From NCBI GenBank assembly GCA_002269645.1, contig NIVC01004786.1, forward strand, positions 1 through 35,040: DNA of 35,040 bases. Reading direction: 5' to 3'. The notes under the pieces were generated by a model that was given only the letters and a program-made list of their open reading frames with translations, had not been told where the DNA came from and made no database searches. The position numbers and the translations under genes are program-made. Positions 3,165-27,456 of the stretch are shown piece after piece (position 1 is the first letter of the stretch; every line of letters begins with the position of its first letter). Origin of the DNA: Macrostomum lignano (taxonomy: Eukaryota).

Positions 3165-6100
3165 TCAGGGCAGGAAGGCCGGCCTGATGACCCACTCGGG
3201 GGTGCCGGCAGGAATCGGCCGCTGACTCCGGGTGGCCTCGTCGCGGACGCACTTGCCGAGCTGGGCGCGCTGCTTCACCGTGGCAAAGCGGCGCATGAAC
3301 GCCTCGTCAAGGCTCCGCTTGATGTCGCGCACCCGGTCAGACTCCCAGGCCAGACAGCGGACTCGCAGCGTCTCGTCCTCTTCTTCCTCATCTGATGAGG
3401 TCAGATCGCGGGTGAGCACGATTCGGTAATGCTCAAGATCGTCAGGCGACAGGTTCGGCAGTAGAGTCTCGAAGGCCTTCTGACGGCGGCTCAGCTTCTG
3501 CATATTTAGGTACAGGAAGGTAGAGAAGCGGTATGAACTACTGTAAGTAGCGAAATTGAATTTTACATATTTTCAAAAATTTTACTTCATAAAATATTTC
3601 CAAACAGCTGAAATTGATAAATATTAGGTGTTAAATTGACGGGGCAAAATCCGACAGTGTGGAATCTGGCACAAACTAGGTAGGTCATGGTGAATGACCA
3701 CAGAATGATCCTTTTGATAAGCATCAATAAATTCAATGATATTCAATGATATTGCTGACTGAGTAGCAGAGCTCACTCAGAGACATTGGGGATTGAGTAG
3801 CGGAGCTCACTCATGGACATTGGGGATTGAGTAGCGGAGCTCACTCAGGGACATTGGGGATTGAGTAGCGGAGCTCACTCAGGGACTCACTCATGGACAT
3901 TGGGGATTGAGTAGCGGTGCTCACTCAGGGACATTGGGGATTGAGTAGCGGTGCTCACTCAAGGACATTGGGGACTGAGTAGCGGTGCTCACTCAGGGAC
4001 ATTGGGGATTGAGTAGCGGAGCTCACTCAGGGACTCACTCAAGGACATTTGGGATTGAGTAGCGGTGCTCAATCAGGGACATTGGGGATTGAGTACCCAG
4101 AGCTCACTCAGGGACATTGAGCATTGAGTAGCTCAGTCACTCAGACTCTCCAACCAGTAGCAAGACTCTCTCACCCGCTTCCATCTGCCACTCTTTGCAG
4201 CAGACTTTCTACGCACAATAATCCACTTAAGTTCGTAAGCAAAGTATTTTGAAATTTTGCCTGAAAATTGAATTATCAGAATTAATCTATTTTCAAGCAG
4301 AGTATAAAAAGCAAAAAACTTACAATACTATTCAAGCGAGTTTGCCATGTCAGCCCAAAAGAGCTACGTTTAAATTTTTTATATTTAATAAGACCTGATG
4401 GCACAAAAACTTTTTTTATTTAGTAGATCATTTTAAGTTTTAGGACTACTTGCATTAGTACATGTGTATGCAGAAGATGGAAACAGTGTAGGTACCCCAA
4501 GGCCCAGTGTCAATGTACATTTGTGGGGCTTGTGCCAGTTCAGTGGGGGAAGGGAGACACTGTACGGTAAGGGAAGGCCCAGTGTCAATGTACATTGGTG
4601 GGGCTTGTGACAGTTCAGCGGGGGGAGAGACAGTGTACAAAAAGTCGAGGCCCAGTGTCAATTTACACTTGAAAAAAATCTAGTCAAAAACCGATCTGGA
4701 AGGATGCCTTGTGGCTGTTTTAAATTCTCATAATTACCGACTTCACTCGATAAGAGCGCCAGGCACGCCTTCGCTTATCCATAACAAATTTTCTCTCCGA
4801 GTCAAATGACGTCTTCATCTTGTCGCTGGCAGCTGGGGGAATCGATTTGTAATAGATAATAACACAAATAAAATTTACAGTGGGAGACTAAAGCTAGCAA
4901 GGGCAGAGATTGACAGAGACAGGCAGCTTAAGACAGGCAACTGACCACGCGCAATCGGGCAGACTTTCTGGCTGTCCGCCGGTTGTACAAAATCATATGG
5001 GCCAATCGGCTGTGAAAAATTTCCACGTTAGCTAAAATAATTATAATAGCAATATAATTGATATACAGATAACTGCAGTAATTAGCGCACAAGCCCACAC
5101 TGAAAATGCTGCTGCCTTAAAAAACGCTGCAATATGAATTTGATAATTCCTATCGTCCAAATTTTGAATAATGCTGTTTTTAGCTTGCAAGTGGGAGATG
5201 GCTATAAGCATTGAATATTAATTAAATGGAAATTGTCATTGAAACCTTAAAAACCTCCAGGAACTCCATCTCCGCACACACAGTGCACATCGCAGATACT
5301 ATGCCACTCAGGCATATTCAATACATACTTAGTAAAACAGCTTTCTACTTTCAGTTCAGTAGCAAAGAAGAATACATAAGCTATTTTATAAGAATAAAGG
5401 CCGCTGAAATGACTTTGATAAGTTTAGAAGCCCAAGCTTGCAGGCGTAAACAATTTGCTAGCTAATTAGTTAAGCAGTAATGTACATTAGCCAGTCCACT
5501 GAAATGTACATGGCAGCTTTAGGCTGGAATTCCGAGAAAGGCAATAAAAATTGGGCGTAGTGTGTAAAGGGGGCTGTTGGAGGGTTTAAGCTAGGGGGGT
5601 AAGAGCCAATAAAAAGAGCCTTGGCTTTAAAAATACCATAAAATGCTTCTGTTTAGCTAACTACTGAACTGAAAGTAGTTTATACGAAACGTGCTTTGTG
5701 GCCCATCTAGTTATTATCTATCTCACGTAGATCTTTGGTGCACACACAGACAAACTGGCAGGCCACACACATCTCCCAACACAGGCACTAACCACGCGGA
5801 GTCGGCCAGCTCGTTTAGCAGTTCTCCGATTAGACAATACAATATTGCCCAGCCGCCTGTGGAACTGTTCTGTGCTGGCTAAAATATTTCATGAGAAAAT
5901 ATTTATATATACATATATGCTAATGTATATAGATCTGCTTTTAAAAGCAAATTAGCAGAATGCTGTCACAGTGCTGCCAAAAAAAACGCTGCTGCTTTTT
6001 TATTTAAAAAATAATTGCATGGTGGAGTTGTGTTTTAAACTGCCTCAGAGGCCAGGGACCACTGGAAGGTCAGGTGCTCAGGACTAACCTAGCTGTTCAG

Positions 6101-9100
6101 TCTCAGGTGTTCAGGACTAACCTAGCTGTTCAGTCTCAGGTGTTCAGGACTAACCTAGCTGTTCAGTCTCAGGTGTTCAGGACTAACCTAGCTGTTCAGC
6201 CTCAGGTGCTCAGGACTAACCTAGCTGTTCAGTCTCAGGTGTTCAGGACTAACCTAGCTGTTCAGTCTCAGGTGTTCAGGACTAACCTAGCTGTTCAGCC
6301 TCAGGTGTTCAGGACTAACCTAGCTGTTCAGCCTCAGGTGCTGAGGACTAACCTAGCTGTTCAGTCTCAGGTGTTCAGTCTCAGGTGTTCAGGACTAACC
6401 TAGCTGTTCAGTCTCAGGTGTTCAGGACTAACCTAGCTGTTCAGTCTCAGGTGTTCAGTCTCAGGTGTTCAGGACTAACCTAGCTGTTCAGTCTCAGGTG
6501 TTCAGGACTAACCTAGCTGTTCAGTCTCAGGTGTTCAGGACTAACCTAGCTGTTCAGTCTCAGGTGTTCAGGACTAACCTAGCTGTTCAGTCTCAGGTGT
6601 TCAGGACTAACCTAGCTGTTCAGTCTCAGGTAGGTTTTCAGGATTTCTAGAATTAATCAAAACGTCCTACTAAAATAACCAGCTTACACTTTTGTTCTGA
6701 ACCATTTCTTAGCACTTTTGCGATGCTTCTCAATGGCAATGCGCTGAGCTGTGAACCAGGCGGAACAAGTCTCTAGTTTAAAAAAGTTATTAAGGTAAAA
6801 AAAATTTTTAAAAGACGACGCTAAAAGCAGAGCCTATTCACAACCATAGCGTCAAAGAGGTTTCAACAGAAACAAAAAGATTTCACCCCATACTACTACA
6901 AGTAGGCAGCTTACATTACGAATTCGACCGGATTTTTTTGCACTTTTACGATTTCTCTGCACTGTAACGCTCTGCGATTGAAACCACGTGAGTAGCTTGT
7001 CCGTCAGCTCTGACGCGTCATTAAAATATTATTCAATAAAGCTAGTTGAATAAAGATTAGCTAATTCTGAGAAATTATAGATATCGCGTTGTAGAGGCTT
7101 GCGTGCAATAGAAAATATTGAAAAAATAAGTTTTTTATTAAAAACACCAGGAATTTACTGTTTTCCATCGTTTGGATCGTTTGGCACTGATTCTATGCTT
7201 AGCCATGGTGACGCCCTGGGTGACAAAATATCTATTGATTGCGCCTGACGGATTGCGGCGGGGTGTTGCACCTTTAAAACACTTATTTAACAATATAAAC
7301 AGCAAATGGCAGCAAACCGCCTGCTGAACAGAAAGATAATAGAGCGCGTTGAAGAGGCAATTTTCACAACTTACAGCCTTTTGCCTGTTACTCTTGCGCC
7401 AAATTAATCTGGAACGCAAACTAGACTGCTGCAGGAAACCGTATTCCTTCTGACACGTGGCTGCGTGAGTGCGGAATATTTGTTTCTTAGAATTTATATT
7501 TAAATATCGTTTCTTATAACATACTTTAATAAAACAAGCTATGATCTCAAAATGGCTCGTTTCACAAACTCTCAAAGCTTTCGCTATTGATTTGATTTTA
7601 TAAATGTAATTTTAGAAAAAAATCTGTTGTTTCGAAGTTTCCGGATATTGTAATCTCTTAATTGTAGATGACTAGCGTCTGTCTAAATGCACATAGGGTT
7701 GGGGGTGGGACTAGGCACAGTATTCTGTGGGACTAGCGTCTGTCTAAATGTACATAGGGTTGGGGTGATGACTAGCGTCTGTCTAAATGTACATAGGGTT
7801 GGGGTGATGACTAGCGTCTGTCTAAATGTACATAGGTTTGGGGGTGATGACTAGCGTCTGTTTAAATGTACATAGGGTTGGGGTGATGACTAGCGTCTGT
7901 CTAAATGTACATAGGGTTGGGGTGATGACTAGCGTCTGTCTAAATGTACATAGGGTTGGGGTGATGACTAGCGTCTGTCTAAATGTACATAGGGTTGGGG
8001 TGACTAGCGTCTGTCTAAATGTACATAGGTTGGGGTGATGACTAGCGTCTGTTAAATGTACATAGGGTTGGGGTGATGACTAGCGTCTGTCTAAATGTAC
8101 ATAGGGTTGGGGTGATGACTAGCGTCTGTCTAAATGTACATAGGGTTGGGGTGATGACTAGCGTCTGTCTAAATGTACATAGGGTTGGGGTGGACTAGCG
8201 TCTGTCTAAATGTACATAGGTTTGGGGTGATGACTAGCGTCTGTTTAAATGTACATAGGGTTGGGGTGATGACTAGCGTCTGTTAAATGTACATAGGGTT
8301 GGGGTAATGACTAGCGTCTGTTAAATGTACATAGGGTTGGGGGTGATGACTAGCGTCTGTTTAAATGTACATAGGTTTGGGGGTGAACTCAAAAGACGGT
8401 CACGTGATTCTACGATCTGGAAGCCTCAACAAAAGATTTTTTAAATACACGACTGAATTATTTAATAGCTTTTCCACCTTACTTGCGCACCTTTTCAATC
8501 ATCTTTGAATTTCTTAAACTGGATTCCCCCAGCATTAAATATCGACTTGATTGACTGAGTTTTTAAAACTACCAGGTTAGCTAGTATCTTAAATATAATG
8601 AGATTTATAGCATTAGCAGAAGTCTACAAAATCGGAGCACATTATACTATTATTATCACTAATATAATACAATTTGTGGGACAATAAATATGACTACAAC
8701 ATTGAAGCCAATGCACAGAGGCCTGGTGAACCCCCCGGTTCCAGCAACTCGCTTGGCATGCTAAATCAATCGGAGCCGAGACTCACCATTGTTCGCCTGT
8801 AAAATTTGGCCACATTCCTACGATTAGACAGAACTGGCTGCCTATACTGTGAGTAGACGGAGCTTAGCACGGCTGCAAAATAGGCGATTGTGAGTGCCGA
8901 GAGATGCTCAGCTGTGCTGCTGCGACTGGGCTTGCGTTGCTTAATGTCTGATTAGCACTGCGGCTTGGCCCAGTGGGAGGCTGGCCCAGCAACTGAGGAT
9001 CTGGGAGGCTGGCCCAGCAACTGAGGATCTGGGAGGCTGGCCCAGCAACTGAGGATCTGGGAGGCTGGCCCAGCAACTGAGGATCTGGGAGGCTGGCCCA

Positions 9101-10547
9101 GCAACTGACATCTGGGAGGCTGGCCCAGCAACTGAGGATCTGGGAGGCTGGCCCAGCAACTGAGGATCTGGGAGGCTGGCCCAGCAACTGACATCTGGGA
9201 GGCTGGCCCAGCAACTGACATCTGGGAGGCTGGCCCAGCAACTGAGGATCTGGGAGGCTGGCCCAGCAACTGACACTCTGGGAGGCTGGCCCAGCAACTG
9301 ACACTCTGGGAGGCTGGCCCAGCAACCGAGGATCTGGAAGGCTGGCCCAGCAACTGAGGATCTGGGAGGCTGGCCCAGCAACTGAAGATCTGGGAGGCTG
9401 GCCCAGCAACTGACACTCTGGGAGGCTGGCCCAGCAACTGAGGATAAGGGAGGCTGGCCCAGCAACTGAGGATCTGGGAGGCTGGCCCAGCAACTGAGGA
9501 TATGGGAGGCTGGCCCAGCAACTGAGGATAAGGGAGGCTGGCCCAGCAACTGAGGATCTGGGAGGCTGGCCCAGCAACTGAGGATCTGGGAGGCTGGCCC
9601 AGCAACTGAGGATCTGGGAGGGTGGCCTAGCAACTGAGGATCTGGGAGGGTGGCCTAGCAACTGAGGATCTGGGAGGCTGGCCCAGCAACTGAGGATCTG
9701 GGAGGCTGGCCCAGCAACTGAGGATCTGGGAGGCTGGCCCAGCAACTGAGGATCTGGGAGGCTGGCCCAGCAACTGAGGATCTGGGAGGGGGCCCATGTA
9801 CACGTAAGTCTAGTATTCGCTATAAAAGTCTGTCTAAATCTGCAGATTTTTAAGAAGTGTTGCAAGCATAACGCAAAACTCAAATCGGAATCCAACAGCA
9901 AACATGAGAGCCAACAAGCCTACACCAACTGACGCTAAATAGTATAGTTGAAGAAAACGACAAACAAAATGTTAAATTTATAATTTTAGGGAATAATTAA
10001 TTAGGATAATTAATGCATACAATGGGCCGCACTTCTTGAACAGCCGGGACGCCAAAGTTCTGGCGCAGTGGGAGTCTGCACACCAATTTTAGAACCAAGT
10101 AGTGTATGTAGCTCAATATAAATTGCATTGACTCAATAAATTTTTACGATTATAAATCTGAGACACCTGGGCAGCGGCAATTATAACTAATTTTAAGCGA
10201 TTTTTACGGCAGACTTGCAAACACTCGCTGGTTTCTTTCTTTCTCTGTAAACCTCTGCAACGCTATAGCTTAATAATTCAATTGAATACGGCAGTATAAG
10301 TTCATTTAAATAGACATGTAACATACAGGTAAGAAATGCAGTAAATATTAATTAACTTACTGCGCCAAACTTCAGCGTTTGCTGCAATGCCGGACACAGC
10401 CTGGGCCTGATCGATTACTTTCTTGGCCACCATCTGATTCATCGGGTGCTCGAAGCTGAGCAAATTGGAGTGGCGTTGGGTTGGCTGCCTGTCTGTCTGT
10501 GTGTGTCTGTCTGTTCTGTCTGTCTGTCTGTCTGTCCGTCTGTCTGT

Positions 10548-10618
<71 letters not shown>

Positions 10619-10813
10619 TAGTGTCTGTGTGTCTGTCTTAGTGTCTGTGTGTATGTCTGTCTTAGTGTCTGTGTGTATGTCTGTCTTAGTGTCTGTGTGT
10701 ATGTCTGTCTTAGTGTCTCTGCGTATGTCTGTCTTAGTGTCTGTGTGTCTGTCTTAGTGTCTGTGTGTATGTCTGTCTTAGTGTATGTGTGTATGTCTGT
10801 CTTAGTGTCTTAG

Positions 10814-10848
<35 letters not shown>

Positions 10849-13284
10849 GTCTGCCTGTCTGTGTGTCTGTCTGTCTGTGTGTCTGTCTGTCTGCCTGTCT
10901 ATCTGTCTGTCTGTCTGTCTGTGCGGCAGCATGAAGCAAAGGCACAACTCACGGTTTAGCAAAGTCGAACAGGTGTGGTCCGCTGCCTCGCAAATTCTTA
11001 TAAGTGTCCTTCAGAAGATTCTGGAATTCCCAAGACATTCAAAGTAATTATATATAAAAACATTAACTTTTTATTGGGTCACTGGCTCAATCCCATATTT
11101 TAAGAAATTTTTTGAACAAGAATTGCATTCTACATTAGCTACTACGAGGGGCGTACCGAAAGTTTTGAGATACGCCGAAACCACAAATATCTGAAGCAAA
11201 ATTTCTGTCACAATTTTTTGAAGTAGTTGCCACCAGCTTGCACGCATTTCCTCATCCGGTGAAACCACTGCGTTCAGGCTCCAGCCCACTGTTCTTCTGG
11301 CACTGCTGACACCACCTGCTCGAACTCGAATCTTGCTGCTTTAGGGCTCTCAAACCGAGTCCCACGCAGTTGGATCTTCACCAAAGGGAAGGGAAAGAAG
11401 TCGCAGGGTGCCAGGTCAGGGAATATGCTGGATGCGTCCAACTGGACTTCATTCTCGGCCAGAAATGCCAATGTTGCAACAGCCATGTGCGCACTGGCAT
11501 TGTTGTGGTGCAGCAGCAGGCCACGAAGTCCGGTGCGCAGCCGGCGTCTGCGCCACGCATCGAGCACGAGCGGCAGGCACTGGTTAGTATACCAGTCGGC
11601 ATTGACTGTCCGCCTGTTTTGGAGCGCTACAGTCGCCAATTGGCCGGCCTGGCTGAAGAAAGTCGCCACCATCTGCTTCCCGACGCTGCGGGCCCGCTTA
11701 ACTTTCGTTGGAGTGGCATCGTCCGGAAGGAGCCAAACTGCAGAATGCTGCTTGGTTTCCGGGTCGTGCTGGCAGACCCAGGTCTCTTCGCCACTGATGA
11801 TCTCCCAGCATCACTTTGAAGTCCCAGAATCAAATCTTTCCAGCATAAACTCGCACCAAAGCACCCTCTCCGCTTTCTGGTCTCCGTTAGGTTGTGGGCA
11901 CCCAGCGGGCACACCGCTTGGAGGCTCCCAGCTTGTCGTGCAGGATGGTCGTAACTGCTGCCGATCCAATGCCGAGAGCCTCTCTGACCTATGCACAGGT
12001 CACTCGCCGGTCCTCGTCAATCATTCTTCGGACAGCAGCGATGTTTTCGTCCGTGACAGCGGAAGCTGGACGTTCCGTCCGAGGCTCGTCATCAAGGCTG
12101 CTTCGGCCCCACTTACATTCGCTGTACCACCGAAAAAACTATGGCACGTGAAGGGGCTTGATCTCCAAAGACAGCATGTAAAGTTTCAACGCACTGCTCC
12201 TACGTGAGACCTTTTCGCTGGTTGTAAACAATCATGACTCGAAAGTCGCGATTTGTCACTTCATTGGAGCAAGTACAGTTTGGTAGGGGGTATCGTTTTT
12301 AAGGATGTGATTGTGAAAGATTGACAAAAGCGCAAAGGCTGAAAATTAATACTCAATCATCTTAAAGGTGGTACAGTATGTAAATAAAAATTCCTGCAGT
12401 TGTGATTTATGAGTCAGCCGTATCTCAAAACTTTCAGTACGCCCCTCGTATAGTTAATAGCTAGCTAGTAGCTAGGCCTTTCCATTTGCTTATTTCCGCT
12501 ACACTGACTGCTACAAGAGCTCCATGAAATGCTTTCGCTACGTTCATTAATTAACAAGCCAGGCTGTCTATCTAATAAGGAAGAGAACTGAGAGTTTTCA
12601 ATAAATTTAATTCATACTACTCAGAAAGTTCATATGGTAAGTAGGCAGTGCGAATTTTAACTCTTTTTTGGCACTCACCCGAACATCCACGTTGCTGGGG
12701 CCGCCAGCAGCGCAAGCGCCGGCGCCGCCGCTGAAGCTGCTCTCCTCCTCCAGCAGCAGACAGTCGTCGTCTTCGTCGTCCCCGGGAAACGATGAGGCTC
12801 CCCCAGCATCGCTAGCAAAGCTGTCAACGTGGCCGAGAGTCTGCTGATGAAGCTGCTGGTGCTGCTGTTCCAGCTTCACGCCGAGTAGCGGCTCCTTCGG
12901 CTCCAATTTGCACGGCCGCTTTGCCGACGGCGGACTGGCGCCATCGCCGGCGCCAGCAGCAGCGGCAGCACTGGAGCAACTGGCCGCGGCTGAGTGATGC
13001 TGGCGGAGACTCTGCTGCTGCTGTTGCAGCTGCTGCAGCTGTTCCTGCAGCTCCCGATTGGAGGACTGCACCTGACCAGCGCACGGCTGCATCACATCAA
13101 CAGCCTGGTGCTGCAGGTTGCAGATGAGGCGCACAGCGGCCACCAGTTCGTCCAGCGTCATGCTGTCCAGCAGCATGCCGGCATTGAGCAGAGTGGACTC
13201 AAACAGGGTCAGCGCGGAGAATGAGGACTGAGCAGCTGACGGCTGCTGCTGATGATGGATAGGTAGCACGGATGCGGCAGACAT
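3165..13284 (-). CDS. Paralogue A of an uncharacterised C14orf93/DUF4616-like family with an internal cassette-exon array (~395 aa per isoform)
   Basis: Constant exons 13284-12679 (MSAAS..NVDVR|gtgagt), 11020-10953 ([23 protein letters not shown]), 10455-10361 ([31 protein letters not shown]|gtaagt), one cassette from 8872-4175, last exon 3497-3165 ([38 protein letters not shown]). All junctions are GT-AG and phase-consistent; every exon is homologous to paralogues B and C. Confidence 0.85.
3756..4137. repeat. Intronic minisatellite, 34 bp unit
   Basis: GACATTGGGGATTGAGTAGCGGAGCTCACTCA(T/G)G tandem copies. Confidence 0.9.
4175..4260 (-). CDS. Paralogue A cassette exon A9 (86 nt): (S)[28 protein letters not shown]
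   Basis: attttcag|GC..CGG|gtgaga; phase 1 in, phase 0 out; open; homologous to the other cassettes. Confidence 0.85.
4496..4660. repeat. Degenerate tandem repeat, ~2.5 copies of ~75 bp
   Basis: GGCCCAGTGTCAATGTACATT.GTGGGGCTTGTG.CAGTTCAG recurs. Confidence 0.7.
4738..4832 (-). CDS. Paralogue A cassette exon A8 (95 nt): (T)[31 protein letters not shown]
   Basis: ttcccccag|CT..TCG|gtaatt; phase 1/0; C-terminal half aligns with A6/A7 without gaps. Confidence 0.75.
4946..5031 (-). CDS. Paralogue A cassette exon A7 (86 nt): (T)[28 protein letters not shown]
   Basis: ttattttag|CT..GTG|gtcagt; phase 1/0; clear duplicate of A6. Confidence 0.88.
5376..5461 (-). pseudogene. Possible dead or poison cassette (86 nt, in-frame TAA)
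   Basis: attag|CT..TAT|gtattc gives exactly 86 nt and phase 1/0, but [27 protein letters not shown] shows little similarity to the others and the donor is weak. Confidence 0.3.
5793..5878 (-). CDS. Paralogue A cassette exon A6 (86 nt): (T)[28 protein letters not shown]
   Basis: atattttag|CC..GTG|gttagt; phase 1/0; shares VLSNRR with A1. Confidence 0.88.
6068..6630. repeat. Intronic minisatellite, 33 bp unit
   Basis: TCAGGTGTTCAGGACTAACCTAGCTGTTCAGTC, ~16 near-perfect copies. Confidence 0.95.
6688..6772 (-). CDS. Paralogue A cassette exon A5 (85 nt as assembled; 86 if a G is missing at the donor): (K)[28 protein letters not shown]
   Basis: ttttaaactag|AG..AAAGT|gtaagc; restoring GTG|gtaagc gives 28 codons like its siblings; peptide closely resembles A3/A4. 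Confidence 0.72.
6915..7009 (-). CDS. Paralogue A cassette exon A4 (95 nt): (K)[31 protein letters not shown]
   Basis: cgtcag|AG..AAT|gtaagc; phase 1/0; RKSAKKSGR is shared with A5/A9. Confidence 0.85.
7159..7244 (-). CDS. Paralogue A cassette exon A3 (86 nt): (S)[28 protein letters not shown]
   Basis: ccgtcag|GC..ACA|gtaaat; phase 1/0. Confidence 0.83.
7375..7460 (-). CDS. Paralogue A cassette exon A2 (86 nt): (T)[28 protein letters not shown]
   Basis: ctcacgcag|CC..GCT|gtaagt; phase 1/0; same length, more divergent peptide. Confidence 0.75.
7664..8385. repeat. Intronic minisatellite, ~39 bp unit
   Basis: GATGACTAGCGTCTGTCTAAATGTACATAGGGTTGGGGT, ~18 copies. Confidence 0.95.
8483..8568 (-). 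pseudogene. Possible dead or poison cassette (86 nt, in-frame TGA)
   Basis: cctggtag|TT..CAA|gtaagg; 86 nt, phase 1/0; [27 protein letters not shown]; strong donor but weak acceptor and weak similarity. Confidence 0.35.
8787..8872 (-). CDS. Paralogue A cassette exon A1 (86 nt): (T)[28 protein letters not shown]
   Basis: ttttgcag|CC..ATG|gtgagt; phase 1/0; an in-frame upstream acceptor at 8911 is also possible; FYRRTM mirrors FIRRLM of B4. Confidence 0.83.
8975..9790. repeat. Intronic minisatellite, 28 bp unit
   Basis: CTGGGAGGCTGGCCCAGCAACTGAGGAT, ~29 copies; source of three spurious long ORFs. Confidence 0.95.
10488..10922. repeat. (TGTC)n microsatellite with a derived 24 bp higher-order unit
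   Basis: Fills most of paralogue A intron 10952-10456. Confidence 0.95.
11145..12448 (-). mobile_element. Full-length (1304 bp) defective mariner transposon, irritans/Hsmar2-like TIR
   Basis: 30 bp TIRs CGAGGGGCGTAC(C/T)GAAAGTTTTGAGATACG (1 mismatch), TA duplication at 11143-44 and 12449-50. Minus-strand transposase remnants: HTH region, [32 protein letters not shown]. Several stops and frameshifts. Sits in intron 1 of paralogue A. Confidence 0.95.
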
Positions 13285-16718: not shown

Positions 16719-19700
16719 CTACACCCCATAGCTCTCCTCGCCGTCTCCGCTGCCGCCGCCGGGCAGAGCCTGCCAGGCGGGATTCCTGGCCCAGGTCAGG
16801 CTGTCAGGCGGAGGCGGCCGGTTGGACAGCACAGCCGGATCGCGCTGCACCCGGCTGATCTCGGCCCGCTGCTTGTCATCGGCCAGCCTGGCTAGGAAAG
16901 TTTCGTCTAATTTCTGCTTCACAGCTCGCAGCTCGTCGCTCTCCCATGGCAACGAGCGGACCTTCATCTCAGAGTCTAAATCTGTGCCGCCCTCCTCATC
17001 CGAGCTGGTGTAGTCTCTGGTTAGCACGCTCTCGAATTTCGTTTGGGCAGACGGATCCAGCTCGTCCTTAATGAGCTCGTAGCTCTTCTGCCGCCTGTTC
17101 AGCTTCTATAGGCGGACAGTGGGAATTGGCAGGTTGGTTATCCAGGTTAATTGCATAAAGCGGCCGAGTGTGAAGAATGGAGCATCCACTCTCATCATTG
17201 CAGAGGAGTGACACACTAATATGAAAAGTGAAACAGTCACTGCAGAGGAGTGACACACTAATATGGAGAGTGAAACAGTCATTGCAGAGGAGTGACACAC
17301 TAATATGGAGAGTGAAACAGTCACTGCAGAGGAGTGACACACAAATATGAAGAGTGAAACAGTCACTGCAGAGGAGTGACATACTAATATGAAGAGTGAA
17401 ACAGTCACTGCAGAAGAGTGACACACTAATATGGAGAGTGAAACAGTCACTGCAGAGGAGTGACACACTAATATGAAAAGTGAAACAGTCACTGCAGAGG
17501 AGTGACACACTAATATGGAGAGTGAAACAGTCACTGCAGAGGAGTGACACACTAATATGGAGAGTGAAACAGTCACTGCAGAGGAGTGACACACAAATAT
17601 GAAGAGTGAAACAGTCACTGCAGAGGAGTGACATACTAATATGAAGAGTGAAACAGTCACAGCAGAGGAGTGACACACTAATATGAAGAGTGAAACAGTC
17701 ATTGCAGAGGAGTGACACACTAATATGGAGAGTGAAACAGTCACTGCAGAGGAGTGACACACTAATATGGAGAGTGAAACAGTCACTGCAGAGGAGTGAC
17801 ACACTAATATGAAGAGTGAAACAGTCACTGCAGAGGAGTGACACACTAATATGGAGAGTGAAGCAGTCACTGCAGAGGAGTGACACACTAATATGGAGAG
17901 TGAAGCAGTCACTGCAGAGGAGTGACACACTAATATGAAGAGTGAAACAGTCATTGCAGAGGAGTGACACACTAATATGGAGAGTGAAACAGTCACTGCA
18001 GAGGAGTGACACACTAATATGGAGAGTGAAACAGTCACTGCAGAGGAGTGACACACTAATATGGAAAGCGAAACACCTACAACTGAGACACAGAGCGAGA
18101 TCAGGTGGAGATAGTACATGCAGTAAAATCGCAGGAGTGGCGCAACGTCTTTGGCAACAACGGCCCACATCTGTTACTAAGGCAACTCAGCCCATTTCGC
18201 TGACTCCTGAGGCTAAGATTCGGAAAATCGTAGAAAAAATGCCATTAAATGGCGAGCAGGTGAAAAATCACAGACCATTAATCGCCGTATGAATCGCTGG
18301 GTGTCCACATTCTTAACAACATTTCTGAACGGATACTTGAGATTCTTGGCGTAATAGTAGCGAAAGTACTTCACTGCTAGGGCTAAAAACAAACAAACAA
18401 GGATAGATAACCAACGCTAGACGCATTCGGATTAGAGAATGGCAGGACGGGCTGGTGCAGGCTGGTGGCTTCTATCTGGCCTATCCTAGCTTCTTTTTTC
18501 TTCTTCAAAAATTCAAAACAGATTTAACAAACGCACCAGACTCTGCCGCACGATATTCATTGTGTCAAGCTCGCGTTTGCGCAGCTTATAAGCCGAGCGC
18601 AAGTTTTTACTATAGTGGCCGCCGAAATAACGCCTGGCTGCGTCTGAACAGTAATTCATTATGTATGATTATTAAGTTATCAATGTTCTAACTGGCTAGG
18701 TTCATTTGGATCGTTTGCAGGGCTGTTGTGCACTGTGCAGACAGCACAATATCTATTCCATTCCCAACTTTTAGCTGATAATTGGTCACGCGTTTGGCTA
18801 AAAATTATGAAGCTACGTTATGGTTACGAGTTATTCAACTATTTGTTTTAACTAAAATTGGCCTTAAAATCGGTGCAGCAAAGTGGCTGCGTATCATCTT
18901 GTACGAGTACAGCTACTTACCATTCTTTCTTTTCTGTGAACACTCACGAACAGTCGCAGTCATTCCCATTAGACACTCGCAATCCTTCCCGTGAACAGTC
19001 GCAATCATTCCCGTGAACATTCGCAATCATTCCCGTGAACAGTCGCAATCCTTCCCGTGAACAGTCGCAATCATTCCCGTGAACACTCGCAATCATTCCC
19101 GTGAACAGTCGTAATCCTTCCCGTGAACAGTCGCAGTCATTCCCGTGAACAGTCGTAATCCTTCCCGTGAACAGTCGCAGTCATTCCCGTGAACAGTCGC
19201 AGTCATTCCCGTGAACAGTCACAGTCATTCCCGTGAACAGTCGTAATCCTTCCCGTGAACAGTCGCAGTCATTCCCGTGAACAGTCGCAATCATTCCCGT
19301 GAGACACTCACAAGTGAGGCTGATACGCGAAAAGAAGGCCGATGCCGTTTGAGATGCTGGTATTGCCAGTTCTTGTAATACTGAGGACTGAGATAGCGAT
19401 GGCTCTTGGCTGGACAAGCAAATTTGAATTTAGCATTGAGCTGTGTTGTTGCCTTTCAGAACTAGCAACAGGAAAACCCGAAGCGCTGGTACAAAAGAAG
19501 ACTACAGGCATCGCAGGGTCTTGTGCGCTTAAATTGGAATTAGCTCTTTTACGGCATTGCTTACCAGAAACAGGTTGACAGAAGTTTTCATTTTCTCCTT
19601 CTGAAAGCCGTACTTCTGAGCCGGTTTCAAGGTGGACGTATAATAAATCCGCAGGTATTTGTTGTAAACCGAGTCTGCGCGATAAGACCGCGTGCCAGCC

Positions 19701-22141
19701 GACGGTGCTTATGATTTCATTAATAATCCCCAAAATCCCCCATTTCCCGAGCTGCACAACAGACTGTTGGGCAATTGGGCACGATTTGAGAGATTATAGC
19801 CAAATTTAGCTGATAATATTACAAAACTACTACTGCTGGCGATTATAATAAAATGCTAATTAGATAGTTGCGTCATACAAGGTTACGTAACAAGTGGGCC
19901 AATGCATCGGCCATAGTGTTTGTCACAAGCATATTTATTGAATTAGTTCACATTGCTAACTAACGGCCCTGCAACGCCCGTATTTTTAGAATATGCAATC
20001 AGGTGTACAGGTGTGGGAAATTGTACAACAATAGGCAAAATAATTAATATCCCTATGCATAAAAGTATTGTAAAGCAGGAATAAACTAATCGTATAGATA
20101 CTAGAACCATCAAATAGATTATACCGATATGTAGCGTAAACAAATTTCTACACTACCAACCTTCTAGAGCAAATTACTTGCAATTATTGAACCCATTAAC
20201 ACTATAGTATGCCATAATATCGTCTACCGATATGTAGTGTAAACAACTTTCTGCACTACTAGCCTTCTATTGACATAAAGTTGACTACCGATATGTAGCG
20301 AATATTGATTTCTACACGACTTTCAATGAAAAAGTGCAGAATGGAGAAGCAGACTACTCACTGCGCCAGGCCTCAACATTAGCGGGCTTGTGCCTGCTCA
20401 GCTCCAGAGCCTTGTCAATAACCCGATTGGCTGCCAGCACGTTGGCCCTGGCAGAATAGGGCAGCGAGAAGTCGAACACGTTGGTGCCAGTCTCGTCTTT
20501 CAACACTCGATAGGCTTTGCGCAGGATGCCTTTCCATTCGTTTGACAGCTCGCCGCTAGCTGAAGAGTCCGCGCCGCCGCCTGCGCCACCAGCTCCGCGG
20601 CCACCGCTGAAGCTGGCCTGCTGATGCTGCTGCTGCTGGTACAGCTGCTGGGACTGCGAGTGCTGATCGAAAATCAAATCGGCTTCCATCAGTACGCAAT
20701 CGTCGTCGGAATCGATAATCTCGGGCTTAATTAAAGTTGATGAAGCGGCTGCCGCAGTCGGACCGGTTGTTGCCAAGGCGCTATCTAGCAGCTTTTTACT
20801 ACTGCTACTATTGCTACTGCTATTACCAACGTTGCCAATGGTGACAGCTGCCGAGCCCACAGAGGTTCCGGGCAGGTGAGAAGCGACTGACATTGACTGA
20901 GTAACCGGCGGTGGACACTGGGAATGTAATAGTAGGATCATTTTGTGCACAATGAACTCATTGATAGGTAATGTAAGTCACGTCGTAATACACCCCTTAA
21001 AGTAATATTCTAAGAAAATCAATTTAAACTTGCAATCTATTTTTAGAATGAGTCAGATCTAATTTTAGAATGAGTCATGTGCAAACTGAAATGACTCAGA
21101 ACCCTATAGAGGACCAGCGTTTATTTGATCAAGGAACCGGATTTCAGCAGCTGTCTGCTTAACCCCATATATGGTAGTGCTCAAATATGCATGACCGCTT
21201 AATCAAACATGTGACGTAAGAAATTATCCGATCTCTAACCAGTTTTTGCCCAAAATTTTGCTATAAATTCAAGTGAAAATCCGAATCAAAAATTTTTTGA
21301 CTCGGAGCGGGCTCAAAGAATACTTCGAAGAAACAAAGAAGGCCAATATTTGAGGGATGAAATCCTGTCCTATTGATAAGCACTTACCATATTTAGTTCT
21401 TTGTTGCTAGCGTTAATAAGTTGATTAATTGAGTTCACGAGAGCCACATTTGAGAAAGGCCCCTTGTTTCTTAGGATATATTCCTAGAGGATTTATTGTT
21501 TTGATTTGAGCTATCCGTTACGTTTCAGACGTAACGAAGAAGACGCCCTTCAGGAGAACCTAAAATTACAGAAACCCAGAGAATACAATTGTTCATTTGG
21601 GCGCACGTTCTACTAGTGTTAATTCCGAGCTCAAGAACACCGTCAAGACTTCTTATTTGCTCTCGCTTTTGATTGACCCACCCACAGATAGAGTCAAGGA
21701 CTTCCGGTGGTAACAATCCCGGAGATATTTGATTTTGCATATACCTAGGCACTTGTTTCCCAGTGTCTAGAAGTGGGAGTTTTCGAGTGACTGATCACCA
21801 CTCTTAAACTCTTCAGTAATAATTATTTAAGGGCAGCCACTCACCAGCGCGTGCTCATCTGCCACATTAGCTAGCCGCTGCACAGTGGGATCCAGCACCT
21901 CCAACAGGTGGCCGTGCAGTTGGGCCACAATTTTGAAAGCCACTAACAGGTCCCGCACAGCCATGTTATCAATCAGCATTGTGGCGCTGGATATTGTGCA
22001 CTCGAACATTGTCAGCGGGGAGAAGCTGCCGCCTCCGCCTCCGCCTCCGCCTCCGCCTCCGCCGCCGCTGCCGCCGCCACCGCCACCGCCAAGCGGCTGA
22101 TGGTGCCCGGCGGCGAAGGGAGGAATGCCAACTGTTGCCAT
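16719..22141 (-). CDS. Paralogue B of the same family (~445-449 aa), with four candidate cassette exons
   Basis: Exons 22141-21845 (MATVG..polyG..FSPLTMFECTISS..EHAL|gtgagt), 20917-20362 (..IKPE..EWKGILRKAYRVLK..FDFSLPYS..ANVEAWR|gtgagt), one cassette from 19674-18276, last exon 17105-16719 (KLNRRQKSYE..YTSSDEE..VRSLPWES..). Confidence 0.87.
17191..18072. repeat. Intronic minisatellite, 42 bp unit
   Basis: GAGGAGTGACACACTAATATGGAGAGTGAAACAGTCACTGCA, ~21 copies; source of the spurious 354/366 aa ORFs. Confidence 0.95.
18276..18382 (-). CDS. Paralogue B cassette B4 (107 nt): (T)LAVKYFRYYYAKNLKYPFRNVVKNVDTQRFIRRLM
   Basis: gtttttag|CC..ATG|gtctgt; phase 1/0; donor weaker than its siblings. Confidence 0.8.
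18537..18643 (-). CDS. Paralogue B cassette B3 (107 nt): (N)AARRYFGGHYSKNLRSAYKLRKRELDTMNIVRQSL
   Basis: actgttcag|AC..CTG|gtgcgt; phase 1/0; YF...Y.KNL is shared with B4. Confidence 0.85.
18945..19303. repeat. Intronic minisatellite, 22 bp unit
   Basis: GAACAGTCGCAATCATTCCCGT, ~16 copies, starting right after the B2 donor. Confidence 0.93.
19312..19409 (-). CDS. Paralogue B cassette B2 (98 nt): (T)KSHRYLSPQYYKNWQYQHLKRHRPSFRVSASL
   Basis: ttgcttgtccag|CC..CTT|gtgagt; phase 1/0; RYL...Y.KN aligns with B3. Confidence 0.82.
19565..19674 (-). CDS. Paralogue B cassette B1 (110 nt): (N)SVYNKYLRIYYTSTLKPAQKYGFQKEKMKTSVNLFL
   Basis: tatcgcgcag|AC..CTG|gtaagc; phase 1/0; same length and first bases (ACTC) as the single exon of paralogue C. 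Confidence 0.85.
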
Positions 22142-22282
22142 GGTAAGTGTTCGAATTGCAGGTTCCGAGTTCAGGTAAGAACAGGTGAGAGAGATTGAGA
22201 CAAATTAACGAACTGGCAGTAATTGGCAAAGGTTAATTTAAGCAGATAACAAACAGATACGCGAATTGTACTACTTGTAGTA

Positions 22283-22701
22283 TAGTATTTGTCATGCTAT
22301 CTCAGCCTAGAGACATCCAAACTCAGCCAGTCCCATTCCGCAATGCGTTTTTTTGGCTCGAGCTAGTCGACTTTTACCATAGACATGCTTCTTAAGGCCA
22401 TGCTATCTCAGCCTGGGACATGCAATCTCAGCCAATATAGATTTCAATTGCAAACAGATCTCAATGCTATCATTTCTATAACGTGACATGAAATGGCAAC
22501 AAACAGCAATGAATGAACGCAGCAAGAAAATTCAGTAAGGGTACGCAACAACGCTGAGATTGCATGTCCCAGGCTGAGATAGCATGGCCTTAAGAAGCAT
22601 GTCTATGGTAAAACTTGACTGGCTTACGTAAAAAATCGCACTGTCGAGATGGGCTGGCTGAGTTTGGATGTCTCTAGGCTGAGATAGCATGACAAATACT
22701 A
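22283..22701. mobile_element. TA-flanked foldback MITE (419 bp) with long inverted arms
   Basis: TAGTATTTGTCATGCTATCTCAGCCTAGAGACATCCAAACTCAGCCAG.. inverted at both ends, plus an inner arm pair (~22372-22432 and ~22553-22612); TA at 22281-82 and 22702-03. Confidence 0.85.
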
Positions 22702-23164
22702 TAGCAAAACTAGCCAGGTGTGATATTTAATTTCATATCAATACCAACAGATAAAAAATTTTAGAAGAACTTGACAAATCAATTGACTCCCATATAATTT
22801 CACAGCACTGCAGGTTGTGTGTATTACTTTTGCAAACAATTTTAACAATAGCCATTTATATGAGCACGAGTAACCGGAAACACAAGCAAGCGCAGGCCAC
22901 GAGCAGAGAAATGCATCAAATTTTCAGTGTTCGGTTCAACACTAACGTAACAAATGATTAGTGAGGGCAAATTAATATATATAAATACAATATATATATA
23001 AGGCTACAATATATATATATATATAAGACTAACGTTTGCAAACGAAATTGCTCCACAAGAAATACTGAAAGCTTTCTATTTAAATTCAAAGATGGTGCGA
23101 TGAAGGAGGAAAAAAGCTGACAGAAGATGAGAGTAGGGAGAGACAAGTCAATTAAGAGGGGGAG

Positions 23165-23592
23165 ATAAGTGAGGAGACAGGTGAGAGGGAGGCAGGTGAG
23201 AGGTAGGCAGGTGAGGGGGAGGCAGATGAAGGGGAGGTTGGTGAGAGGGGAGGCAGGTAAGAGGGAAAGGGAGCAGGTGAGAGGGAGGCAGGTGAGAGGG
23301 AGGCAGGTGAGAGGAAGGCAGGTGAGAGGGAGGCAGGTGAGGGGGAGGCAGGTGAGGGGGGCAGGTGAGGGGGGGCAGGTCAGGGGGAGGTTGGTGAGAG
23401 GGGAGGCAGGTGAGGAGGAAGCAGGTCAGGGGGAGGCAGGTGAGGGGGAGGCAGGTGAGGGGGAGGCAGGTGAGGGGGAGGCAGGTGAGGGGGAGGCAGG
23501 TCAGGGGAGGTTGATGAGAGGGGAGGCAGGTGAGGAGGAGGCAGGTCAGGGGGAGGCAGGTGAGGGGGAGGCAGGTGAGGGTGAGGCAGGTA
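23165..23592. repeat. G-rich minisatellite, 15 bp unit (GGGGGAGGCAGGTGA)
   Basis: Tandem copies; spurious GRQVR/PPHLP ORFs. Confidence 0.9.
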
Positions 23593-23786
23593 TAGGAGGG
23601 AAGAAAACGAGGTATGAAAGGGAGAGAGGATACCGCGATAGACTAGAATGGAGATGTAGAACATAGAGTAAAAAGTAAAACGGAGAGATAAGGGAAAAGA
23701 GAGGGAGATAGTGGACGGATCGGAGAGGAAGTGGAGAGAGCAGAGATGTGAGCTAACCCCCAATATTGACTCGGGCAGCTCAGTTT

Positions 23787-26700
23787 CTAGAAGCGGAACC
23801 CAGACGCAGGATTATCAGCAGTGTCAGTCGCAGTCCTGTTGGCTGTAGTTGCGGCATCGCCCCAGCCAACCACAGCCCAGGCCTGCGGACTGTCGGGCGT
23901 CGGTCGCTGACTAATCCAGGCTGGGTGTCGCCGAACTCGCTCGAGCTCGCGCCGCTCTCTAGGATTAGCGATGACCTCGGCAAAGTGCCGATCGAGCATG
24001 GCTTTCAACCTGGCTGCCTCGGCCGACTCCCAGGACAGCCGTTTCACCCGCAGCACCGTGGAGCTGCTGTCGCCTTCATCGGCGGGCACCTCGTCATCCG
24101 AGCTGGTGTACTGAAGATCGAGTAGGGCGCGCAACCGGGCCGTGTCAACGGGGCTGAGGGCGCCGTGAGCCTGCAGATTGTCGTAGCTGCGCTGCCGCTG
24201 GCTCAGCTTCTGCGGTTGGGAGGGGGTCACAGCTGCCTTGGCTACTGTAGCGGGGGGGGTGTCACAGCTGCCTTGGCTACTGTAGCGGGGGGGTGTCACA
24301 GCTGCCTTGGCTAATGTAGCGGGAGGTCACAGCTGCCTTGGCTACTGTAACGGGGGGTCACAGCTGTCTTGGCTACTGTAGCGGGGGGTGTCACAGCTGC
24401 CTTGGCTACTGTAGCGGGGGGGTCTACAGCTGCCTTGGCTACTGTAGCGGGGGGGGGGGTCACAGCTGTCTTGGCTACTGTAGCGGGGGGTCACAGCTGC
24501 CTTGGCTACTGTAGCGGGGGGAGGTCACAGCTGTCTTGGCTACTGTAGCGGGGGGTCACAGCTGACTTGGCTACTGTAGCGAGGGGGGTCACAGCTGACT
24601 TGGCTACTGTAGCGAGGGGGGTCCCAGCTGACTTGGCTACTGTAGCGGGGGGGGTCACAGCTGCCTCACCTTGGCAGCTCGGGATGCCCAGCCGTGCCTG
24701 GGCTGGTGCTGTCGGCGATAATTTCTACGAAGAATGTCTTTGAACCAGTAGCGCATGAATGTCTCCACAAGGATGGAGTCTGCAAATAAAATCAGACAGA
24801 CAAGCGGTTGTCCTGGAGTCCGGAATTAAAGTAAAAATTACAAATATGGCTTCTGAGTCTAGATATCGATGGTCTTTGGTTTATGTGGTAGCGCTAAACA
24901 GTGCGGCTTGGAAAGGCTGCCCTCACTCTAATGGTCAATCAATGAGCCTCTACTACCCTCACGATTCACCAATGAGCCTCTACTACCCTCACGATTCACC
25001 AATGAGCCTCTACTACCCTCACGATTCACCAATGAGCCTCTACTACCCTCACGATTCACCAATGAGCCTCTACTACCCTCACGATTCACCAATGAGCCTC
25101 TACTACCCTCACGATTCACCAATGAGCCTCTACTACCCTCACGATTCACCAATGAGCCTCTACTACCCCATTATTCACCAATGAGCTTCTAGTGGCATCA
25201 CGATTCACCAATAGCCTCTATTACCCTCACGATTCACCAATGAGCCTCTACCATCCCTAAGATTCACCAATGAGCCTGTCTACCACCCCAATATTCACCA
25301 ATGAGCCTGTCTACCACCCCAATATTCACCAATGAGCCTGTCTACCACCCCACTATTCACCAATGAGCCTGTCTACTATCCCACTTTTCACCAATGGGCA
25401 TCTCTACTACCCTCACGATTCACCAATGAGCCTCTACTACCCTCACGATTCACCAATGAGCCTCTACTACCCTCACGATTCACCAATGAGCCTCTACTAC
25501 CCCATTATTCACCAATGAGCTTCTAGTGGCATCACGATTCACCAATAGCCTCTATTACCCTCACGATTCACCAATGAGCCTCTACCATCCCTAAGATTCA
25601 CCAATGAGCCTGTCTACCACCCCAATATTCACCAATGAGCCTGTCTACCACCCCACTATTCACCAATGAGCCTGTCTACTATCCCACTTTTCACCAATGG
25701 GCATCTCTACTACCCTCCCGATTCGCCAATGAGCCTGTTTACCACCCCACGATTCACTAATAATTGACTACTACCTCCACGGCCTAGCAATAAGTTACTA
25801 CTTTGGCTAGGATACTACTTAATCTATGGCTGTAATAATGAAACAAACATGACGCTCACTTTTCCACGACTCAACATCGGGCGGCGGTTGGCTAGTCATT
25901 GACACGGCCTGGTTGATAATGGCCTGGGCCGCCTTCAAATTCACTGGGGCAGAGTATCTGCGGGTGCAGTTAGCGATCTAGCGCTGCTATTACATATAAA
26001 AAGGATGCTAGCCTAGTGGTTAAAGCGTCGGACTCTCGACTTGAAGGTCGAGGGTTCGATTCCCGATCCCAATGGAACGATTTGTGTCCTTGACACCCAG
26101 CTATAAAAAATGGGTGCCAGAAAAAGCTGGGGAAATTGAGGGTGTGTGTGGCGACCCCCCCCCCCCCAGTCATACATGCGCAACTGCTGGCCGACCTGGC
26201 CACCGTAAATTGTGGTGGACCAGGGGTAAGTCGCAAAAATGCCCACCCCAAAGAATACAGACGTAGTACTAATTAGATGACGAGGCATTTAGCCCTTACA
26301 AGAGAGTCATAGTTACTCCTGCCGTTTACCCAAAATTGCGTTAATGTTGCTCTAGGGTTTCTTTCACAGGTAGGTCACATTTTTGGTCAAAAAGTAAGTC
26401 GCATGGCCAGTGTAAATCAGGGGGTTGCGCATGTATGCCCCAGTCCTTAGACTGAACAGCTGTACGCAGCCTTCAGTCCAATTCAGTCAATAGCTGCGGC
26501 TGAGCTGTCGGTTGCACACCTGGCCCAATAAGGCCGGGTGTAAATCAATTAATTAATTAAAAATCATGATGTACAACCTAAACTAAAACTGAATAATTGG
26601 GTTCTGAACTTTTACAGACATGAGACACTTGGAATTCAATATTTCAGTGCCGACAATGGCATCCACATCGAACTCAGTCCAAATTCAGTGCCATGCCTCA

Positions 26701-27456
26701 TGCCTCCAGTACGCCACAGAAAACACCCCCTGGCATTTTAACTCACGATTTAGTGAAGTCAAACAGCTCTCCGCATTGCTCTTTGATAGACCGATAGGAG
26801 CGGCGCAGCAGCTGCTTCCACCTGTCGGACAGGGCGCCACCGCCGCCAGTGGCTGATGAAGCGGCACCACCGGAAGCGCCGGCGCCAGACACGGAAGCTG
26901 TGGAGCTGGAGCCGCCTGCTCCAGTTGACAGCAGCAGCTGACTGTGGTTGCCCAGGCCAAGGGTGTTGGACTCTGACGCTTCATCCGACCACAGCATCCC
27001 GGCCGTGCCGCTGGCTCCGAATTCCTCCTGACTGGCTTCGCAGTCTGGCACCTCGTCGTCGTCGCCGCCGTTATCTTCAGCCGCTGCAGCACCGGCTTCT
27101 TCTTCCTTGATGCCAATCGATAGTATTGATTTTTGCAGGCTATGACTTTCAGACTGTTGGTTATTTAACTGGGACTCGGACTGCTTCGGGGGCTTCTGCT
27201 GCTCATCTCGCCGACCGTTGCTGCTGCCATTGTTATAGAGTTCGGCAATCTGCACCAGCCTCCCAGCCGACGGCTCCATCACTTCAACTAGGCGGCCCTG
27301 CAGTTGGCAGACAATCTTCTGCGCTAGTATGAGATCAACCAGCTCCATCGATTCTATTAGCATCTGGGCGTTGCTGATTGTGCATTCGAATAGGGCTATT
27401 GGCGAGAAGACACTATTCGAGCCTGGTGAGGTGGCAGGTAGACAGGCTGTGGCCAT
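23787..27456 (-). CDS. Paralogue C of the same family (446 aa), single copy of the cassette exon
   Basis: Exons 27456-26747 (..FSPIALFECTISN..IKEE..WKQLLRRSYRSIK..FDFTK-S|gtgagt), 25957-25860 (YSAPVNLKAAQAIINQAVSMTSQPPPDVESWK|gtgagc), 24779-24670 ((N)SILVETFMRYWFKDILRRNYRRQHQPRHGWASRAAK|gtgagg), 24209-23787 (KLSQRQRSY..YTSSDDE..VKRLSWES..). Phases are consistent. Confidence 0.88.
24222..24665. repeat. Minisatellite (~32 bp unit, variable G-run) making up almost the whole last intron of paralogue C
   Basis: GTCACAGCTGCCTTGGCTACTGTAGCGGGGGG, ~13 copies, between donor 24669 and acceptor 24210. Confidence 0.93.
24940..25760. repeat. Intronic minisatellite, 30 bp unit, with a higher-order block duplication
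   Basis: CAATGAGCCTCTACTACCCTCACGATTCAC; the variant series at ~25150-25410 recurs at ~25490-25720. Confidence 0.93.
26003..26285 (+). mobile_element. tRNA-derived SINE (3' end approximate), antisense in intron 1 of paralogue C
   Basis: Pol III A box TAGCCTAGTGG (26009-19) and B box GGTTCGATTCC (26053-63); poor anticodon stem; followed by a non-tRNA body GTGTCCTTG..CACCCAGCTATAAAAAATGGGTGCC. Confidence 0.75.

Follow-up and report, generated by a model that had tools for sequence, protein, structure and literature searches.

Three tandem genes with cassette arrays

The window analyzed here was the whole of contig NIVC01004786.1 (35,040 nucleotides, nt; assembly GCA_002269645.1) of the flatworm Macrostomum lignano, and its minus strand carried three tandem paralogues of one uncharacterized animal protein family. 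A preliminary description of the sequence had proposed three strongly diverged genes on one strand, with identical module order and conserved constant parts around a variable segment, and all of this was borne out. The pairwise identity among the three genes in the conserved domain was 31–34% in an alignment with one database paralogue. The constant motifs W/V[KR]xLL[RK]xxY..L, FDF...[YF]..N, W[RK], KLxxRQ[KR]x[YF], TSSD[ED]E, V..L.WES..K..LD..F and S.RP.P were invariant columns of the same alignment.

In each gene, the variable part was encoded by one or several short exons (cassettes) placed between two constant exons. The exon before the array ended in ...TGG CG[C]/AA[A] A directly before the gt of a phase 1 donor in all three genes, and the last exon began with AAG CTG (K-L) directly after the ag of a phase 0 acceptor. 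The module N..A..I..A...W[RK] was present once per gene and is thus constant, with the variable part downstream of it. Cassettes were enumerated as open segments between AG and GT that are entered in phase 1, left in phase 0 and basic in their C-terminal half. This yielded precisely 9, 4 and 1 cassettes for genes 1, 2 and 3, respectively, the same count as in the preliminary description, and supported the two-tier repertoire (gene duplication multiplied by exon duplication) proposed there.

All 14 cassettes were located in the slot between the phase-1 donor after W[RK] and the phase-0 acceptor before KLxRRQ, and all were open in frame, bounded by canonical AG/GT sites and 2 mod 3 in length (83, 86, 95, 98, 107 or 110 nt). 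They were basic, with 6–11 Lys plus Arg and 0–4 Asp plus Glu residues. The gene-1 cassettes shared the motif x5-[YF]-x8-[hydrophobic]2-x-[NR]R[RK][ST]A[KR]K-x2-R, and those of genes 2 and 3 had [RK]Y[FL]xxxYxKxL[KR] in common. A leave-one-out hidden Markov model (HMM) search of all six-frame open reading frames (ORFs) of the window ranked seven gene-1 cassettes as the top non-seed ORF; for c2 and c3, both within one ORF, the search carries no information. The cassette pattern is real and well beyond chance.

Reading frame, gene models and conservation

All single inclusions of the 14 cassettes reached the normal stop, and those of gene 1 were complete in nine of nine cases. Without a cassette, gene 1 shifted frame and met a stop after ~19 codons; all 36 of its double inclusions contained premature stops, 17 of these before the last junction. 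Because the cassette lengths are 2 mod 3, exactly one cassette (formally also 4 or 7) keeps the C-terminal module, and the arrays are therefore expected to behave as clusters of mutually exclusive exons (MXEs). The layout was also that of such clusters, namely tandem exons of similar length, with the same phases and with sequence likeness, in one slot between constant exons, and the reading frame provided a mechanism against zero or double inclusion. A search for Dscam-type docking and selector elements, a low-power test, found no k-mer common to the nine upstream or the nine downstream flanks above shuffled controls. The sequence evidence suggests mutually exclusive splicing as the best reading.

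The GenBank models of this assembly were derived from genome-guided RNA-seq transcript assemblies with TransDecoder, and alternative transcripts and those overlapping repeats were excluded from the annotation (PMC5730564). Absence from the annotation is weak evidence because such transcripts were filtered out. One cassette was present in each complete database model: c2 in P0014, c3 in P0064, the gene-3 cassette in P0045 and one of at least seven in P0005. The UniProt entries A0A1I8GSM9 and A0A1I8HID5 (P0014, P0048) represented gene 1 with c2 alone. The model BOX15_Mlig031385g2 (P0064), located on a near-identical duplicate contig, ran from exon 3 through c3 to the last exon; its odd C-terminus was c3 plus the last exon in a shifted frame, owing to a 2-nt insertion in gene 1 exon 3 of that contig. 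The spliced product of gene 3 (446 residues) was exactly GenBank PAA46593.1 (P0045, BOX15_Mlig007426g1), and a protein search with its spliced domain matched solely M. lignano proteins. At the paralogous Mlig012439/Mlig030636 locus, two different cassettes were used by P0005 and by P0050/P0031. The homeolog models of gene 2 (P0022/P0041) joined exon 2 directly to c4, skipped c1–c3 and retained the next intron, so that P0022 held one cassette and ended in the intron behind it. A poorly assembled paralogue model, P0026, read across two cassette-like segments.

Ends within a retained intron were observed at three independent loci (P0022; P0050/P0031; P0051/P0052/P0054), and the predicted proteins there lacked the C-terminal module. 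These models may reflect intermediates that are spliced slowly, or else a genuine class of truncated isoforms.

A second, homeologous copy of the locus was found on NIVC01000001.1, with the three genes in the same order and products of 471, 336 and 274 aa; its introns were about 92–95% identical to those of the window. The comparison covered 11 cassettes (g1c1–c6, g2c1–c4 and g3c1, numbered by gene and cassette) and 150 nt of flank on each side. The cassettes differed by 7 substitutions in 1054 nt (1047/1054 identical, 99.3%), whereas the flanking introns differed by 153 substitutions in 3162 aligned positions (3009/3162 identical, 95.2%) and by many indels (Fisher p = 2.3e-12). Six cassettes were 100% identical, and four of the seven substitutions were synonymous. 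As judged from this comparison, the cassettes appear to be under functional constraint.

A further contig, NIVC01001379.1 (161300–190907; L004), was ~99.9% identical to the window, introns included, and says nothing on selection. It differed by 1–2-nt indels that broke frames in gene 1 exon 3 and in g2c2; the differences of this contig are assembly redundancy or sequencing error, not biology. In the c5 region, the window read ACAAAAGTGTAAGC, whereas two other copies (L003 22810–22895; L004 16179–16264) read ACAAAAAGTGTAAGC. With the extra A, c5 had the modal length of 86 nt and a gtaagc donor, and the window form had 83 nt and a gtgtaa donor; both were in frame.

Table 1. Exons and cassettes of the three genes (positions in the window; homeolog values are identical over total nucleotides)
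Feature	Positions	Strand	Remarks
Gene 1 exon 1	12679..13284	-	first ATG 13284; donor CGG/gtgagt; N-terminal conserved helix and Q-rich/acidic linker
Gene 1 exon 2	10953..11020	-	phase 0 to 2
Gene 1 exon 3	10361..10455	-	FEHPMNQ...AEVWR; phase-1 donor A/gtaagt
Gene 1 cassette c1	8787-8872	-	86 nt; 85/86 in homeolog, homeolog donor weaker
Gene 1 cassette c2	7375-7460	-	86 nt; in models P0014/P0048; 84/86 in homeolog, both changes synonymous
Gene 1 cassette c3	7159-7244	-	86 nt; in RNA-seq-based model P0064; 86/86 in homeolog
Gene 1 cassette c4	6915-7009	-	95 nt; 94/95 in homeolog
Gene 1 cassette c5	6690-6772	-	83 nt in the window; in two other copies 86 nt, with a better donor (gtaagc)
Gene 1 cassette c6	5793-5878	-	86 nt; 86/86 in homeolog
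Gene 1 cassette c7	4946-5031	-	86 nt
Gene 1 cassette c8	4738-4832	-	95 nt, or 86 nt via alternative donor at 4747
Gene 1 cassette c9	4175-4260	-	86 nt
Gene 1 last exon	3165..3497	-	KLSRRQKAF...TSSDEEE...WES...RPIP...; stop 3165-3167
Gene 2 exon 1	21845..22141	-	agrees with model P0022
Gene 2 exon 2	20362..20917	-	CPPPV...WKGILRKAYRVL...FDF...AWR; phase-1 donor
Gene 2 cassette c1	19565-19674	-	110 nt; NSVYNKYLRIYYTSTLKPAQKYGFQKEKMKTSVNLFL; 110/110 in homeolog, flanks ~95%
Gene 2 cassette c2	19312-19409	-	98 nt; TKSHRYLSPQYYKNWQYQHLKRHRPSFRVSASL; 97/98 in homeolog
Gene 2 cassette c3	18537-18643	-	107 nt; NAARRYFGGHYSKNLRSAYKLRKRELDTMNIVRQSL; 107/107 in homeolog
Gene 2 cassette c4	18276-18382	-	107 nt; TLAVKYFRYYYAKNLKYPFRNVVKNVDTQRFIRRLM; 107/107 in homeolog; in homeolog models P0022/P0041
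Gene 2 last exon	16719..17105	-	KLNRRQKSY...TSSDEE...WES...RPPPP
Gene 3 exon 1	26747..27456	-	BOX15_Mlig007426g1
Gene 3 exon 2	25860..25957	-	YSAPVNL...ESWK
Gene 3 single cassette	24670-24779	-	110 nt; NSILVETFMRYWFKDILRRNYRRQHQPRHGWASRAAK; in PAA46593.1; 110/110 in homeolog
Gene 3 last exon	23787..24209	-	

Gene 1 exon 1 agreed with the N-terminal parts of models P0014/P0064. Gene 2 had no proper annotation on NIVC01004786.1 (the annotation look-up covered 13787–35040, and gene 1 lies outside that range). A GenBank coding sequence of 354 aa in 17106–18170 was wholly within a minisatellite (42-nt unit, 21 copies) of the last gene-2 intron, and it probably represents the longest ORF of a gene-2 transcript, called spuriously. 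In intron 1 of gene 1, a degenerate remnant of a mariner-type transposase was detected at 11071–12207 on the minus strand (Pfam Transposase_1, E 6.9e-7). The remnant was missing from the homeologous locus, where this intron measured ~274 nt vs. ~1658 nt in the window; since the homeologous intron is without it, the remnant is a copy-specific insertion. Minisatellite arrays with units of 22–42 nt and 8–30 copies were found in many of the longer introns near the cassettes (3760–4144, 6070–6631, 7731–8382, 8974–9796, 17195–18075, 18948–19302, 24222–24666 and 24940–25761). The genome is known to consist of 15% simple and tandem repeats, and these minisatellites may be background. Scans of the window for tRNA genes and Rfam families gave no match.

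Protein domain, family range and origin

In each protein, a conserved helix at the N-terminus was connected by an acidic or Q-rich linker of low complexity to a C-terminal domain of ~210 residues. An AlphaFold2 model of the domain, built with an alignment of 18 family sequences, reached a mean predicted local distance difference test score (pLDDT) of 84 and a predicted template modeling score (pTM) of 0.57; a single-sequence run (pLDDT 44) was of no use. The model contained helices at residues 3–20, 33–49, 57–112 (56 residues) and 118–127, followed by an acidic loop and a strand-helix-helix-strand unit. The helix 57–112 contained the cassette, which encodes its middle part, together with the constant KLSxRQ segment, in agreement with the variable helix of the preliminary description. 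The small C-terminal alpha/beta module, which follows the acidic TSSDEE linker, carried WES...LD...RPxP.

No relative of this domain was recovered in Pfam, PDB or BFVD. Pfam gave no match above noise for single exons, spliced domains, the nine gene-1 isoforms or distant homologues, a profile of 18 family members found nothing among the PDB sequences, and Foldseek, queried with the pLDDT-84 model, returned best E values of 3.6 in PDB and 1.3 in BFVD. Three known domains were considered and rejected. Some cassettes resemble helix 3 of the homeodomain (IWFQNRRMK); kinship with it had an hhalign probability of 0.2%, the nine gene-1 isoforms had no Pfam hit at E up to 10, and there was no Foldseek hit. 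One member, P0070, is labeled "BEN domain-containing" in UniRef, and neither P0070 nor other members matched Pfam PF10523. The resemblance to bZIP was by eye; there was no Pfam match, the motif was off by one residue, and prolines rather than a zipper followed.

Two further short motifs were observed in the M. lignano paralogues. All carried an N-terminal helix with "FSPLTLFECT..NA.ML..SM...DL", encoded by exon 1 in genes 1 and 3 and by exon 2 in gene 2 (e.g., at 20.6–20.7 kb), and an acidic "DDDC[VIL][LIM][LM]" common to them resembled a small ubiquitin-like modifier (SUMO) interaction motif. Neither matched Pfam.

An exhaustive phmmer search, in which a Macrostomum paralogue was the query and 1.84 billion representative proteins were the target, returned only 41 representative clusters at E<=1e-3. 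Nearly all named members were M. lignano "hypothetical proteins," and the others were uncharacterized proteins of the brachiopod Lingula anatina and the hemichordate Glandiceps talaboti and a few unnamed environmental sequences. The family was characterized by W..LL..Y, FDF, KLSRRQK, TSSDEE, WES..LD and S.RP.P, in this order, over a domain of ~210 residues, and it was an orphan. The Lingula protein (LOC106158935, XP_013390516.1) matched a Macrostomum member at E 3e-8 and the Glandiceps protein (LOC144453630, XP_078001082.1) at E 5.6e-6, each over ~190 residues. In Lingula, the exon preceding the slot ended in phase 1, a 125-nt exon encoded AACRVYYRSLRDDFKR...RLKR, and the next exon started with AAA TTA (K-L of KLSRRQ). 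The arrangement in Glandiceps was the same, with an exon of 113 nt.

Because position, phases and the 2 mod 3 length agreed in three phyla, the cassette was an ancient discrete exon. Both orthologues thus shared the domain, the helix-3 exon slot and its phases with Macrostomum. However, they had only one cassette, a coiled-coil took the place of the Macrostomum N-terminal motif, and the Lingula gene, unlike the Macrostomum genes, was not seen in a tandem cluster. The proposal of a lineage-specific family was therefore not upheld, since Lingula and Glandiceps have homologues of identical exon structure; only the arrays are specific. As the sequences indicate, the cassette exon was tandemly duplicated in the Macrostomum lineage, and the family expansion and the cassette arrays appear to be Macrostomum-specific as far as databases show. 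The family is unlikely to derive from a transposon, as its homologues in Lingula and Glandiceps are genes with several exons and the one in Lingula has ordinary neighbors.

The window is only part of the repertoire. The gene Mlig012439g1 (NIVC01000068.1; L006 11829–14180) spanned 15.9 kb and had at least seven cassettes with the motif KY[LFM]xxYYxxLK, and the paralogue Mlig015980 had one cassette, identical to g1c2 at 14 of 29 residues by hand count. The numbers of cassettes per Macrostomum locus were thus 1, 1, 4, at least 7 and 9 at different loci, and tandem clusters and arrays may be family-wide. Directly downstream of Mlig012439g1 there was a 564-aa gene of unchecked identity, and two family members on another contig, PAA73637 and PAA73638, had adjacent accessions. 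No earlier description came up in a literature search that covered the gene IDs and the combination of Macrostomum with "mutually exclusive."

Function of the variable helix and comparison with known systems

We consider it probable that the locus represents mutually exclusive cassette arrays in an uncharacterized bilaterian family, in which the exchanged segment serves as a specificity surface. The ~14 proteins made from the locus would then be alike except for a basic helical segment of 28–37 residues. With its aromatic N-terminal half, the cassette would pack against helices 1 and 2, while the exposed Arg/Lys-rich half, together with the constant KLSRRQK stretch, would form a specificity surface for a negatively charged ligand. 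This ligand would most simply be nucleic acid in the nucleus, and the composition would also fit an acidic partner. Cassette choice would in this way re-target an otherwise constant protein. The preliminary description had proposed nuclear regulators, usable for cell-identity coding or for the recognition of fast-evolving DNA; the searches of Pfam, PDB and Foldseek and the homeodomain comparison gave no direct support for a nuclear role or for DNA recognition. Only the composition, with a very basic helix, the acidic TSSDEE and Q-rich/acidic linkers, points to a nuclear, nucleic-acid-binding role.

Several points weigh against this interpretation. None of the Pfam, PDB or Foldseek searches tied the protein to DNA or RNA binding, and as the search for docking and selector motifs found none, frame selection is the sole supported mechanism. 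The existing models show two of the nine gene-1 and one of the four gene-2 cassettes only, and several end inside a retained intron after the cassette, so that some products may be truncated. The homeolog sequence ended before g1c7–c9, which placed these three outside the conservation test. The leave-one-out HMM scores were weak for c1 (E 2.8) and for c8 (E 0.17), the weakest member; g2c2 was missed, and the gene-2 cassettes were more diverged.

The best surviving alternative, which we regard as possible but clearly the less likely, accepts real mutually exclusive exons and assigns to the variable helix the tuning of protein-protein contacts, oligomerization, localization by the strength of a nuclear localization signal (NLS), or kinase regulation. 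It agrees with the lack of likeness to any DNA- or RNA-binding fold and with the lower pLDDT of the cassette segment (65–82). The basic stretch also resembles NLS and protein kinase A (PKA)-type motifs (RRKS, NRKS, HRKS), with an RRxS-type site in several cassettes. Where a long, strongly basic, continuous helix lies beside an acidic phospho-tract, the arrangement most often serves nucleic-acid binding, and it is only for this reason that the alternative is less favored than a nucleic-acid ligand.

It is improbable that each gene has only one or two genuine cassette exons and that the rest are decaying duplication remnants, that is, pseudo-exons spliced never or by accident. Such decay could be read from the database models, in which only c2 and c3 of gene 1 and c4 of gene 2 appear, from the weakened c1 donor in the homeolog and the 1-nt indel in c5 between copies, and from the poor recovery of c8 and g2c2 by similarity. 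However, all 14 cassettes retained AG/GT sites, open frame and 2 mod 3 length, and cassettes absent from gene models were as conserved as the modeled ones; for example, g2c1 (110/110), g2c3 (107/107) and g1c6 (86/86) were identical in the homeolog against flanks of ~95%. An artefact, whether of a redundant assembly rich in repeats or of ORFs that arose by chance among the minisatellites of the introns, could be suspected from the minisatellite-filled introns, the GenBank ORF inside one minisatellite and the 1–2-nt indels between near-identical copies, but it is already effectively refuted, as the cassettes are situated outside the tandem arrays, are present in two other contigs and in independent gene models, and have a homologous single exon in two other phyla.

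Beyond the cassette arrays with a putative specificity surface, a stronger proposal can be made, which we hold to be speculative and rather doubtful. An ancient bilaterian domain with an exon-encoded, recognition-type basic helix would have been made programmable by multiplication of genes and exons, giving dozens of isoform-specific nucleic-acid-binding or chromatin-targeting proteins on an undescribed fold. If true, this programmable helix would generate diversity in the manner of lola or Dscam. With its variable basic helix, the protein may contain a specificity module, and the family itself is an unannotated domain family, confidently modeled and without a Pfam or PDB relative. Macrostomum lignano is tractable for transgenesis, which opens isoform function to direct experiment.

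The well-documented cases of large mutually exclusive exon clusters come mainly from arthropods. Family-wide clusters in a basal flatworm would be an independent case for the origin of arrays and for exon choice, in which the array was built on an exon with Bilateria-conserved boundaries and single inclusion is enforced simply by the reading frame. Like the arthropod clusters (Dscam1 exon 4/6/9, Mhc, MRP and 14-3-3zeta), the Macrostomum arrays consist of tandem exons of similar length in one slot that arose from exon duplication; one exon per mRNA is used (predicted here), and the variants replace the same structural element. Unlike them, the length of 2 mod 3 lets the reading frame enforce single inclusion, and no docking/selector pairing signal of the Dscam type was detectable. 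The host is a flatworm, and the variable element belongs to an uncharacterized, probably intracellular, helical domain, whereas the arthropod systems act in an immunoglobulin (Ig) receptor or a motor. With lola, mod(mdg4) and fruitless of Drosophila, the Macrostomum genes share a constant scaffold joined to one of many alternative exons, a putative target specificity and a diversity that comes from genomic arrays. The variants of those genes are sets of 3′-terminal exons encoding zinc fingers or FLYWCH, some of them trans-spliced, whereas the variable part in Macrostomum is an internal helix of 28–37 residues between constant exons, for which DNA binding is hypothetical.

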